From NCBI GenBank assembly GCA_001179505.1, contig CDMY01000273.1, positions 62,001 through 126,000 on the forward strand: DNA of 64,000 nucleotides, read 5' to 3'. This DNA comes from Vitrella brassicaformis CCMP3155 (taxonomy: Eukaryota > Protista > Chromerida). The notes under the pieces were generated by a model that did not search any database, was not told the DNA's origin, and saw only the letters and a program-made list of their open reading frames with translations. Of this stretch, positions 18,765 through 64,000 are shown piece after piece (position 1 is the stretch's first letter; each line of letters opens with the position of its first letter). Position numbers and translations under genes: made by a program.

Positions 18765-19064
18765 NNNNNNNNNNNNNNNNNNNNNNNNNNNNNNNNNNNN
18801 NNNNNNNNNNNNNNNNNNNNNNNNNNNNNNNNNNNNNNNNNNNNNNNNNNNNNNNNNNNNNNNNNNNNNNNNNNNNNNNNNNNNNNNNNNNNNNNNNNNN
18901 NNNNNNNNNNNNNNNNNNNNNNNNNNNNNNNNNNNNNNNNNNNNNNNNNNNNNNNNNNNNNNNNNNNNNNNNNNNNNNNNNNNNNNNNNNNNNNNNNNNN
19001 NNNNNNNNNNNNNNNNNNNNNNNNNNNNNNNNNNNNNNNNNNNNNNNNNNNNNNNNNNNNNNNN
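18765..19064. other. Assembly gap (300 N)
   Basis: Run of N. Confidence 1.
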
Positions 19065-59891: not shown

Positions 59892-62800
59892 ATGGCGTGC
59901 GAGGTGCTGTCGATGATCGGCAGCTTCGACGAGCTCTCAGATGTACAGCCGGTGGTGAGCAAACACACAGCCCTGCTCGGGTTACAAAGATGGCTGCATG
60001 CGTGTGGGTGCGCATCTGCTGCGCTGTGTGTTGTGTGGGTGTCGATATTATGTCAGGGCGGCTGTCACTGTGGAGGCGTGCATCTGCCTATCGGTGCTGT
60101 GTCTTGCCATCATGACCACCATCCATCGGAGGAGCAGCGCAAGGAATGGGTACCGCGCCCAGACGCACACACACACACAAGGCACCCACACACACTCGAT
60201 AGATGCCCTTATCTGTGTGGCAGGGTCGTTTAAACGACGAGGGTCGCGTAGATTGGTGTTCGCGTGAGGGCAAGTGGAATGTGCACGCCGCCGCATCGAT
60301 GAACTACCAGGTCGCCATGAGCCCTACGCTGTTCGATGTCGACGACGGCACGTTCGCGAGCCACTACAGCAAAACAAAGAGGTGCGTATGAGCGGATGGG
60401 ATGGCTGGCGTGTCCTGTGTGAATGCGCTGGGTTGGGTGCGTGTTTATGGTCGCCTGTGCAGGTGTTTGGCGTTTGTGGATTCGTTTGTGTGGAGCGAGT
60501 ACGGCGACCGGCTGCGGACCTACTTCAACACGTACGAGATCAACGCCCACTTCGTGCCCATCAACATACCAGAGGAACAGAAAACTCTCGCGGTGAGTCC
60601 GCAGACCCACTCACACAAGTGGATAGATACACCACACACGGACGAATGGCTGCCCTNNNNNNNNNNNNNNNNNNNNNNNNNNNNNNNNNNNNNNNNNNNN
60701 NNNNNNNNNNNNNNNNNNNNNNNNNNNNNNNNNNNNNNNNNNNNNNNNNNNNNNNNNNNNNNNNNNNNNNNNNNNNNNNNNNNNNNNNNNNNNNNNNNNN
60801 NNNNNNNNNNNNNNNNNNNNNNNNNNNNNNNNNNNNNNNNNNNNNNNNNNNNNNNNNNNNNNNNNNNNNNNNNNNNNNNNNNNNNNNNNNNNNNNNNNNN
60901 NNNNNNNNNNNNNNNNNNNNNNNNNNNNNNNNNNNNNNNNNNNNNNNNNNNNNNNNCCGCACCGCATCGGGGGCTACCGCTTCCGCACCGACATCACCTT
61001 CGACGAGCTGGTCGACGTCTGCGGCGAGTACGCACGGGTGATGACTGTGCGGGTCGAGAAGCTCATCTGCGACGCGCCCGCGACGCTGCGGCTCCTGCCG
61101 CCCGTCACCGATAGCGATAGAAAGGAATGGGTGAGTGAGCTAACACAGACAGGCACAGAGAGAGTCGTGGGTCGTGTCTGGTGGCTCATTTATGTGGTGT
61201 TGTGTGTGTGTGTGTGTGGATGGGTGTGCAGAGGTTGAAGAACGACGACGGTCGTGTGGAATGGGAGGCGTGTTACGGCACCTGGTCGGTGGTGGCGAGC
61301 CAGCGCATGGACTACGAGGTCACCATGCGCCCGGGGCTGTTCGACCCGGCAGACGACGCACTCGCACAGTTCTACGCCAAAACCAAGAGGTGAATGACCG
61401 CCTCCACAGGCATCCACGGACGAGTGTGTGTGTGTGAGTGGATGTGTGTGTGTCTGGATGTGCAGGTGTCTAGCGTACGTTGACCCGTTGGTGTGGCAGG
61501 AGTATGGCCATCACATCAAGGCCTACTTCGAGGCGCACAACATCGCAGCTCGGTTCGTACCGTGCGCTGCACCGGAGGAGAACAAAAACCTTGAGGTACG
61601 CCTGAGATACAAACACACACAGAAGGCCCTTTGACACATTGTCCCATGTGTGTGCGCGTGTGTGTGTGTGTGTGTGTCAGTTGCTGGCTGCCGGTGCGCA
61701 AGCCATAGTCGATTTCGGTTTGGATCGTCGGCACGAGCCTGTCTTGGCCATCGGCGGCGGTGTGCTGATGGACGTGGTGAGTTTGCTGTCGTCTCTGTAC
61801 AAGCGCAGGGTGCCCTTCATCCGCATCCCCACCACTTTCCTCGGCATCGTCGACGCGTCCATCGGCGTCAAGACGGGCGTCAACTTCGGCAAAAACAAAA
61901 ACATGCTCGGCACCTACACGCCGCCCAAGGCCGTCTACATCGACACGGCCTTCCTCCGCACAGTTCCCGCACTCCACATCAGAAACGGACTCTGCGAGAT
62001 CATGAAAATGGCCCTCATGCGTGACAACGAGCTCTTCGCACTGCTGGAGGTACACGGGCGGCACATCCACGCACGGCTTGCCTGTGTTGACACATCCTTC
62101 TATCTGTGTGTATGTCCCGATATCTGTGTGTATGTCCCGCGTGCCTGTCTGGTTTAGGATTTTGGTGAGCGTTTGATCGAGACGCGTTTCGGGCACTACA
62201 CGGGCGGCGTGGGGGCGACGATGCCGGCTGCCGAGCTGTCGCAGGTGTGGGAGGCCGGCCAGGAGGTGATCCGCAGAGCCATCCACACGATGCTCGAGGA
62301 ACTCTCCTGCAACCTCACCGAACAAAACCTATACCGGTAAGCCAAACACAGACATTCGCAGAGCCAGCACACACAGCTGTACATAAAGCCTTCCGTTTGT
62401 CTGTGTGTGTGAATGTCAGTTGCGTTGATTTCGGTCACATCTGGGGCCCCGCTGTGGAGCTGGCGGCCTCCCCGCCCATCCCCCATGGGTTTGCGGTCAA
62501 CCAGGACATGGCCTACTGCGTGTACCTGAGCTACCGGGGCGGGTCGCTCACATGGGAGGAGGCGTGCCGCGTATGGCACTGCATGGACCGCCTGGGCCTG
62601 CCGCGCAGCCACACCTACTACCTCGACCCCTCCCTGATGCACCCCACGCTCATGAAGATGCAGAAGACCCAGGCCGGCATGCACAGGGTGCCCATCCCGC
62701 ACCGCATCGGGGGCTACCGCTTCCGCACCGACATCACCTTCGACGAGCTGGTCGACGTCTGCGGCGAGTACGCACGGGTGATGACTGTGCGGGTCGAGAA

Positions 62801-64000
62801 GCTCATCTGCGACGCGCCCGCGACGCTGCGGCTCCTGCCGCCCGTCACCGATAGCGATAGAAAGGAATGGGTGAGTGAGCTAACACAGACAGGCACAGAG
62901 AGAGTCGTGGGTCGTGTCTGGTGGCTCATTTATGTGGTGTTGTGTGTGTGTGTGTGTGGATGGGTGTGCAGAGGTTGAAGAACGACGACGGTCGTGTGGA
63001 ATGGGAGGCGTGTTACGGCACCTGGTCGGTGGTGGCGAGCCAGCGCATGGACTACGAGGTCACCATGCGCCCGGGGCTGTTCGACCCGGCAGACGACGCA
63101 CTCGCACAGTTCTACGCCAAAACCAAGAGGTGAATGACCGCCTCCACAGGCATCCACGGACGAGTGTGTGTGTGTGAGTGGATGTGTGTGTGTCTGGATG
63201 TGCAGGTGTCTAGCGTACGTTGACCCGTTGGTGTGGCAGGAGTATGGCCATCACATCAAGGCCTACTTCGAGGCGCACAACATCGCAGCTCGGTTCGTAC
63301 CGTGCGCTGCACCGGAGGAGAACAAAAACCTTGAGGTACGCCTGAGATACAAACACACACAGAAGGCCCTTTGACACATTGTCCCATGTGTGTGCGCGTG
63401 TGTGTGTGTGTGTGTGTCAGTTGCTGGCTGCCGGTGCGCAAGCCATAGTCGATTTCGGTTTGGATCGTCGGCACGAGCCCGTGTTGGCCATCGGCGGCGG
63501 TGTGCTGATGGACGTGGTGAGTTTGCTGTCGTCTCTGTACAAGCGCAGGGTGCCCTTCATCCGCATCCCCACCACTCTCCTCGGCATCGTCGACGCGTCC
63601 ATCGGCGTCAAGACGGGCGTCAACTTCGGCAAAAACAAAAACATGCTCGGCACCTACACGCCGCCCAAGGCCGTTTACATCGACACGGCCTTCCTCCGCA
63701 CAGTTCCCGCACTCCACATCAGAAACGGACTCTGCGAGATCATGAAAATGGCGCTGGTGAAGGACTACAAGCTCTTCACACTCCTCGAGGTCAGTCGAGC
63801 GACCTTAGCACCCCACAGCCCCCCATGTCCGCGCCGTTGTCAATTGTGCTGGTTGTGTTCTCTCAGGAGTTCGGTGAGTCGCTGATTGAGACGCGTTTCG
63901 GCCATCTGAGTCACGGCGACTACCGCTCGTCGGAGCTCAAGGATCTCCGCGAGGTGGGCCAGGAGGTGATCCGCAGAGCCATCCACACGATGCTCGAGGA
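59892..64000 (+). CDS. Multi-domain sedoheptulose-7-phosphate cyclase (EEVS-like, DHQS superfamily) polyprotein with at least 3 tandem cyclase domains; runs off the window
   Basis: Per unit: W.V.A...YEV..LFD, EENKNL, RRHEPVLAIGGGVLMD, RIPTT.LGIVDAS, KTGVNF..NKN.LG, NGLCEIMK, MLEEL..NL.E, VDFGH and HGFAV..DMA. Units are joined in phase at RKEW|RLKNDDG with no stop. Confidence 0.9.
60657..60956. other. Assembly gap (300 N) inside the cyclase array
   Basis: Run of N. The flanks are the N-terminal half of unit 1 and a C-terminal piece identical to that of unit 2. Confidence 1.
60957..64000 (+). repeat. Tandem repeat, period 1740 bp, of the cyclase unit including introns
   Basis: 60957-62012 matches 62697-63752 except 4 substitutions (61740/63480, 61743/63483, 61837/63577, 61935/63675). 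Confidence 0.95.

Follow-up and report, generated by a model that had tools for sequence, protein, structure and literature searches.

Exon organization of the locus

The DNA analyzed here is a 64,000-nucleotide stretch (the window) of Vitrella brassicaformis CCMP3155, taken from contig CDMY01000273.1 of assembly GCA_001179505.1, and its right-hand end, from position 59892 onward, is the 5′ two-thirds of one V. brassicaformis gene. This gene, on the forward strand, encodes sedoheptulose-7-phosphate-cyclase modules in tandem, with neither a start nor a stop codon between them, and extends past the window to a position equivalent to 66689 (16798 in L002, our excerpt of the same contig) through a further cyclase exon, a linker, and the exons of an O-methyltransferase (OMT). 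An earlier interpretation, referred to below as the sequence-only reading, had described a leader followed by three or more concatenated cyclase units, with unit 2 at 61232-62870 and unit 3 starting at 62972. We retain these two names for the blocks as assembled and use modules A and B for the cyclases of the gene as reconstructed below.

The first leader exon (59892-59954) carries the start codon (MACEV...), lies six codons downstream of an in-frame stop, and has a translation that matches the N-terminus of the public gene model P0151. The second leader exon (60057-60149) ends in ...EEQRKEW ahead of a phase-0 GT intron, a type of ending shared with the last exon of module A. Module A then begins with exon 1′ (60224-60381; GRLNDEGRVDW...) and exon 2′ (60463-60592), the latter ending in ...EEQKTLA and keeping the E..K motif. 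An assembly gap of 300 N (60657-60956) conceals the remainder of intron 2′ along with the first 27 nt of module A exon 3. The segment after the gap (60957-61680) contains the end of exon 5, the junction intron, exon 1, intron 1, exon 2, and intron 2, and is probably an artefactual duplicate of 62697-63420. Exon 3 of the assembled unit 2 (61681-62049) has the core and 3′ end of module A with a first 27 nt of the module B type, and it matches PF01761 (DHQ_synthase) at 2.3e-30. Module A continues with exon 4 (62158-62336) and exon 5 (62420-62870), which runs from CVDFGH... to ...TDSDRKEW with no stop codon and matches PF24621 (DHQS_C) at 6e-09. A phase-0, GT-AG junction intron of 101 nt (62871-62971) separates it from module B, whose exons lie at 62972-63129 (exon 1; RLKNDDGRVEW...), 63206-63335 (exon 2), 63421-63789 (exon 3), and 63867-64000 (exon 4, which runs past the window end).

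As assembled, unit 2 is composed of exons at 61232-61389, 61466-61595, 61681-62049, 62158-62336, and 62420-62870, with every intron of the GT-AG type. The spliced product of 1287 nt encodes 429 amino acids, with no start codon in front and no terminal stop. Exon-by-exon rebuilding thus bore out the earlier description of a unit that is open at both ends and that passes from ...TDSDRKEW through a phase-0 GT-AG intron into RLKNDDGRVEW, and the exon map likewise agreed with its statement that intron positions are common to the units. The introns at 61130-61231, 61390-61465, 61596-61680, and 62337-62419, together with their copies, have (CA)n-rich 5′ parts and (GT)n runs before the acceptor.

Splicing and expression of the tandem modules

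Contigs of four public sequencing runs (X2, X4, X8, and X9) were aligned to positions 62011-64000. Runs X8 and X9 proved to be RNA, with zero depth in all introns (including a depth of 0 in the 62882-62948 bin of the junction intron), and runs X2 and X4 to be DNA, with evenly covered introns and contigs of 225 kb and 61 kb. One RNA contig (X8 record 14, 553 nt) aligned to 62663-62869, 62971-63132, and 63209-63335, and so extends through module B exon 1 into exon 2; a second (X9 record 19) aligned to 62663-62869 and 62971-63117. The splices 62869|62971 and 63132|63209 match the exon ends 62870, 62972, 63129, and 63206 within repeat ambiguity. Two independent RNA studies thus show exact removal of the junction intron, with ...RKEW connected in frame to RLKNDD..., and the RNA depth across the junction (621 in X8 and 8.5 in X9) is the same as in the adjacent exons. 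The introns after module A exons 3 and 4 were seen as GT..AG joints in X8 and X9 (62047>62156 and 62335>62419 in tool coordinates), as was module B intron 3 in RNA (63787>63865, cut +2). We conclude that conventional cis-splicing of the phase-0 junction intron links the tandem modules within one mature mRNA and that they are not separate transcripts; the sequence-only reading had rightly described one spliced frame concatenating cyclases. The possibility that separate unit mRNAs undergo spliced-leader (SL) trans-splicing was rejected, given that the junction is spanned by RNA contigs at undiminished depth.

The public gene model and the fused O-methyltransferase

The public model P0151 (1482 amino acids) maps to the same contig of GCA_001179505.1, in the excerpt L002, which is identical to the window where the two overlap. 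Its order is leader, exons 1′ and 2′ spliced across the gap to unit 2, unit 3, a Ser/Ala/Gly-rich linker, OMT, and tail. Pfam domains in P0151 comprise two DHQ_synthase and DHQS_C pairs and a Methyltransf_3 domain (residues 1115-1315, 3.5e-43). The OMT domain is of the cation-dependent class I, with 5LHM, 3TR6, and 3CBG as its best structure matches, and among the proteins compared it is closest to the OMT domains of DDGS-OMT fusions (39% identity to P0294 and 34% to P0088). Two points of the sequence-only reading are revised by this sequence. Unit 3 does not end in ...KEW, although each unit had been said to end in ...TDSDRKEW, and instead continues into the linker and OMT beyond position 64000; and the OMT partner, which had not been seen to the left of the units, forms the 3′ part of this very gene, immediately past the window end. 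The suggested downstream check for partner genes was accordingly rewarded in part, by an OMT domain within the gene itself; no other pathway gene lies within 10 kb. No signal or transit peptide was seen at the N-terminus by a crude test, which found no hydrophobic stretch past the first few residues.

Number of cyclase modules

The segments 60957-61256 and 62697-62996 were found by a repeat finder to be 100% identical at a spacing of 1740 bp, and we examined copy number by means of the assembler word depth of Logan contigs combined with a path argument. The segment made up of the exon 5 end, the junction, exon 1, and exon 2 (62663-63381) had depths of 19.6, 6.2, 621, and 8.5 in X2, X4, X8, and X9, respectively. 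The corresponding values were 21.8/21.3, 8.7, 706/570, and 11.2/10.3 for the tail specific to unit 2 and 24.4, 5.8, 637, and 9.7 for the tail specific to unit 3, whereas the shared exon-3 core (63448-63752) reached 41.9 in X2, 1144 in X8, and 22.3 in X9, with no value in X4. The junction segment is thus present at 0.80-0.97 times the depth of its unique flanks in all four runs, and the exon-3 core at 1.8-2.1 times that of unique sequence. Since it contains the junction twice, in identical copies, and the core three times, the assembly would predict twofold junction depth and threefold core depth.

A second line of evidence came from an alternative 27-nt start of exon 3 (TLKRCAQEI). In three of the three runs showing the core, a contig enters it at 63448 from upstream letters that differ from those of the assembled exon. 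These letters are absent from the window and from L002, even with four mismatches allowed. They are preceded by GCG in RNA, where exon 2′ ends in ...CTCGCG, and by CAG, an acceptor, in DNA. The alternative start is module A's own, inside the unread gap. Given a single entry on the leader side and a single one on the junction side, together with two cores and two distinct single-copy tails, the only linear path has two modules. It would run from the leader through exons 1′ and 2′, exon 3 with the A start, the core, and the unit 2 tail to the junction, and from there through exons 1 and 2, exon 3 with the B start, the core, and the unit 3 tail to the OMT.

The most direct alternative takes the assembly as correct, so that the gene would hold three or more cyclase modules, more of them possibly hidden in the gap, in a true multi-cyclase array. 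The scaffold itself shows such an array, in that the sequence resuming after the gap (60957-61231) ends one module and leads into another, complete one, and the gap length is an estimate only. Since an array of three would need a doubled junction and a tripled core, at odds with the values from four runs of DNA and RNA, and since the observed multiplicities leave the two-module path as the sole linear one, we regard this alternative as rather improbable and consider it likely that the gene has two cyclase modules. The three or more units of the sequence-only reading do not agree with a junction segment at approximately onefold and an exon-3 core at approximately twofold depth in both DNA and RNA; the extra unit most likely arose as an artefact of assembly at the gap. 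Segment 60957-61680 is probably a duplicated assembly walk through the repeat cycle beside the gap. On this basis P0151 should carry ∼96 spurious residues while lacking the true exon-3 start of module A, and the true protein should comprise ∼1386 residues.

Two metagenome scans, one with the hidden exon-3 start and one with an exon-3 core word, gave no match. An environmental contig (L001; ENA ERZ893784, k147_1055246, 2487 bp) is 96% identical to module B exons 3-4, which indicates that a close Vitrella relative is present in the ERZ893784 sample. In this contig exon 5 precedes exon 3 and is on the other strand, an inverted, chimeric arrangement that gives no information on the junction. Marine-sediment metagenome runs X12-X16 contain 10-28% of the words of the locus.

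Family assignment of the cyclase modules

The Pfam matches to DHQ_synthase and DHQS_C, which exceed the Pfam thresholds, together with ValA as the best structure, place the modules among sedoheptulose-7-phosphate-cyclase-type domains, in keeping with the EEVS-like superfamily membership proposed earlier. NCBIfam returned AroB-type matches only, all below threshold. Against the Protein Data Bank, unit 2 scored 2.1e-81 (277 bits) with ValA, an EEVS, the enzyme type that forms 2-epi-5-epi-valiolone from sedoheptulose 7-phosphate, and 9.9e-73 (248 bits) with the desmethyl-4-deoxygadusol synthase (DDGS) of Anabaena (5TPR), compared with 1e-31 or worse for true dehydroquinate synthases (DHQS). The top database matches were actinobacterial sedoheptulose-7-phosphate cyclases/EEVS and fish EEVS at 41-44% identity. 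A search of exon 5 against 1.84 billion cluster representatives gave nothing above ∼41% identity except the P0151 cluster with near-identical environmental fragments, and a length-matched search with P0151 gave only four distant megafusions.

To assign the modules more closely, 98 homologous domains were aligned, columns conserved in at least 80% were listed, and discriminating sites were derived from the named EEVS and DDGS rows. In both modules the GGG..D and E..K motifs for NAD binding and the metal ligands E, H, and H are retained, at columns conserved in at least 95% of homologues, as are most of the other columns conserved in at least 80%; alignment to ValA and DDGS gave the same picture. 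At the xDxGH site, which has D in EEVS and A in DDGS (13 of 13 rows), both modules have D (CVDFGH). After the second metal His, EEVS have E and DDGS have H (11 of 13 rows, with Q in the other 2), and Vitrella has F. The third site is HR in EEVS and TR in DDGS (12 of 13 rows, with KR in 1) and is TQ in both modules; among homologues, 86% have H and 94% have R here. The MLExx motif is EL in EEVS, LE in DDGS, and EL in Vitrella. The residue numbering and role of these fingerprint sites are reportedly treated by Kean and coworkers (2014).

Trees were computed from 100 rows (quick) and from 66 rows (quick and careful). The two modules are mutual sisters (100/100) and fall, together with P0014 and P0017, in a clade with the DDGS group and outside the named Streptomyces and fish EEVS groups. 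The DDGS group comprises named cyanobacterial demethyl-4-deoxygadusol synthases, fungal enzymes, and DDGS-OMT fusions. Support for the clade was SH-aLRT 96-98 in the quick trees and UFBoot 89/SH-aLRT 88 in the careful tree, and that for a position as sister to DDGS proper was UFBoot 82/SH-aLRT 58. P0014 (669 amino acids, OMT-fused) and P0017 (392 amino acids), both from Logan contigs, have the EEVS-type D and HR, and the residue following their second metal His is L or F; both may represent additional EEVS-DDGS intermediates.

The sequence-only reading had favoured EEVS over DDGS. The slightly better score with ValA and the D of VDFGH speak for that assignment, but the modules group in trees with DDGS and its OMT fusions and their sites are mixed, so it is not established. 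We lean slightly toward a DDGS-like cyclase chemistry; an EEVS-like chemistry is possible and distinctly less probable, and some other chemistry is a little less probable again. A more radical proposal is that the modules are EEVS-DDGS intermediates with an Asp/Phe/Thr-Gln site unlike that of any characterized cyclase, which would make a C7-cyclitol distinct from both 2-epi-5-epi-valiolone and desmethyl-4-deoxygadusol, and that the tandem duplication would have created an obligate single-chain heterodimer channelling this product to the OMT. We regard this proposal as rather doubtful; if true, it would represent a new entry to sunscreen-like chemistry in algal relatives of apicomplexan parasites.

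Divergence of the two modules and proposed origin of the duplication

The DNA identity between modules A and B is 72.5% for exon 1 (exon 1′ in A), 61.5% for exon 2 (exon 2′ in A), 80.5% for exon 4, and 74.5% for exon 5, but 98.8% for the first 330 nt of exon 3. Over this exon-3 core (61681-62010 versus 63421-63750) only 4 of 330 nt differ and the synonymous divergence (dS) is 0.037, whereas outside the core dS is 0.68-1.0, with dN/dS of 0.33-0.46. On the basis of this contrast in dS and of the dN/dS values, the sequences indicate that the duplication is old and that both copies are under purifying selection, and the sharply bounded core looks like a tract that was homogenized by recent gene conversion.

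This divergence bears on whether the modules split labour, one making the cyclitol used by the OMT and the other making a different C7-cyclitol or serving as a non-catalytic scaffold. Outside the exon-3 core the modules differ by ∼20-40% in DNA, and their exon 4 loop differs in both length and sequence. At every column conserved in at least 80% of homologues, however, the two have the same or similar residues (F/L, I/L, and G/K), including the unusual D/F/T/Q set, and dN/dS is below 0.5 in both diverged parts. We therefore consider a division of labour unlikely.

The end of leader exon 2 (...EEQRKEW|gt) resembles that of the last exon of module A (...DSDRKEW|gt) when 60057-60149 is compared with 62780-62870. 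The shared ...RKEW is a probable footprint of a tandem duplication joined at the leader exon. In the sequence of events that we propose, a dinoflagellate-type cyclase-OMT fusion would have undergone an internal tandem duplication that reused the ...RKEW|intron junction of the leader.

The same motif could be read as a processing signal. Polyproteins occur in alveolate algae, and plastid polyproteins are found in dinoflagellates and Euglena; in Vitrella, each module is preceded by a similar short motif, RKEW and then (G)RL(K)ND.GRV.W, and a polyprotein cleaved in the linkers (...RKEW/RLKNDD...) and ahead of the OMT would free the cyclases and the methyltransferase. The repeated motif is nevertheless accounted for by the duplication, and beyond it there is no recognizable cleavage motif. 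There are only two modules, the N-terminus has no signal or transit peptide by the crude test described above, and single cyclase-OMT fusions are widespread with no sign of cleavage. Processing is thus decidedly unlikely. The notion that the whole tandem is an assembly artefact of a single-cyclase gene, for which the gap and the 100%-identical segments adjoining it might be cited, is so improbable that it can be set aside: RNA contigs link the last exon of a module to the first exon of a module, exons 1′/2′ and exons 1/2, like the two C-terminal halves, are clearly distinct (62-80% identity), and both C-terminal halves are at single-copy depth in DNA and RNA.

Proposed enzyme and product

We favour the interpretation, at a probability of roughly 0.62, that the gene is an expressed, nuclear, duplicated-cyclase variant of the dinoflagellate cyclase-OMT fusion and makes a core of the deoxygadusol or gadusol type. 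The link to the dinoflagellate-type fusion is drawn from the clade of the cyclases and the similarity of the OMT. The product would be a multidomain enzyme of ∼1386 amino acids composed of a short leader, two cyclase modules, a low-complexity linker, a class-I OMT, and a tail. As judged from the families to which the domains belong, each module would cyclize sedoheptulose 7-phosphate to a C7-cyclitol with NAD+ and a divalent metal, and the fused OMT would methylate this cyclitol to give 4-deoxygadusol or a near analogue as the core of sunscreens of the mycosporine type; the most likely product, as predicted from the domain content, is 4-deoxygadusol for mycosporine-like amino acids. DHQS enzymes are homodimers, as are ValA and DDGS. 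Because enzymes of the superfamily act as homodimers, we propose that the tandem modules, with their ∼45-residue linker, would form a single-chain pseudo-dimer.

Several points weigh against this interpretation. The active-site fingerprint (D, F after the metal His, and TQ) is that of neither EEVS nor DDGS, and no other pathway gene was found within 10 kb on either side of the gene. The ATP-grasp ligase MysC, with which DDGS (MysA) works alongside a MysB-type OMT, is among the genes not found there. With regard to the number of modules, copy number was derived from the word depth of Logan contigs and not from a gap-spanning read, the link of exon 2′ to the hidden exon-3 start consists of three visible letters plus the path argument, and a third module that is less than 95% identical throughout could conceivably sit in the gap.

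Comparison with known systems

A fusion of a DHQS-like enzyme (DDGS) with an OMT has been described for dinoflagellates, according to a passage in PMC6001144 that cites Waller et al. 2006. As in the database examples of this fusion (P0088, P0294, and P0104), the Vitrella cyclase portion lies N-terminal to a Methyltransf_3 OMT in one frame, the OMT best matches the OMT domains of these proteins (34-39%), and the cyclases share a clade. In contrast to the dinoflagellate fusion, Vitrella has two cyclase modules rather than one, no plastid-type leader was seen, and the cyclases, at ∼35-40% identity, do not have the DDGS signature of A at xAxGH and H after the metal His. The modules share VDFGH, MLEEL..NL.E, and the metal and NAD motifs with ValA and other EEVS but differ from them in having T for His, Q for Arg, and F for the Glu that follows the second metal His. 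Their partner is an OMT of the MysB type rather than the MT-Ox of EEVS systems. With DDGS (MysA) they have in common the Thr at the third site, a sister or near-sister position in trees, and the pairing with a class-I OMT, while differing in Asp rather than Ala at xAxGH, EL rather than LE, and F rather than H after the metal His.

We found no description of this gene in literature pairing Vitrella or chromerids with mycosporines, deoxygadusol, or a dehydroquinate synthase-OMT fusion. Public protein databases already contain the layout in the form of an unnamed prediction, and the cyclase duplication is the feature for which no description was found. The earlier statement that the architecture was undescribed therefore holds for the duplication and not for the single cyclase-OMT fusion, which is known from dinoflagellates on the evidence of the passage in PMC6001144, nor for the predicted protein, P0151 being public.

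Two cyclase domains also occur in one predicted polypeptide in P0133 (2653 amino acids; GCA_021733565.1, JAKFZD010001294.1, L003 2001-9962). Unlike the arrangement in Vitrella, the cyclases of P0133 are split by a ROK kinase-like domain, a zinc alcohol dehydrogenase (ADH) comes after them, there is no OMT, and they fall in a different clade. The first cyclase domain of P0133 has a degenerate fingerprint (VHFGH, KK; H.E.KK). P0156 (2275 amino acids) has, as listed, the same Pfam families as P0133.

The analysis corrects the public gene model P0151 and flags an assembly error at the gap. It reveals in a photosynthetic relative of the apicomplexans an expressed cyclase-cyclase-methyltransferase gene akin to those of the dinoflagellate, cyanobacterial, and vertebrate mycosporine/gadusol pathways. 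Mutagenesis of the two known fingerprint sites has, to our knowledge, left open how sedoheptulose-7-phosphate cyclases choose their product, and a duplicated cyclase with a mixed EEVS/DDGS fingerprint offers a natural test of the residues that set the product. If the product is a UV screen, the gene bears on the high-light tolerance of coral-associated chromerids.

Two further 300-N gaps are present on the contig, at window positions 18765-19064 and at L002 22185-22484 (window-equivalent 72076-72375), the second of these inside or adjoining a downstream CPW_WPC gene, and models that cross either gap may carry similar errors. Among the other large proteins encountered, P0153 (1639 amino acids) and P0293 (2041 amino acids) are fusions of cyclase, OMT (Methyltransf_3), SDR/KR, and GST domains. 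Together with P0154 and P0155 they form a set of megafusions from the Joint Genome Institute and other metagenome or metatranscriptome sources, one of which has a xylose-isomerase-like TIM-barrel domain. From their domain content, these megafusions look like whole cyclitol pathways in one chain, in eukaryotes.

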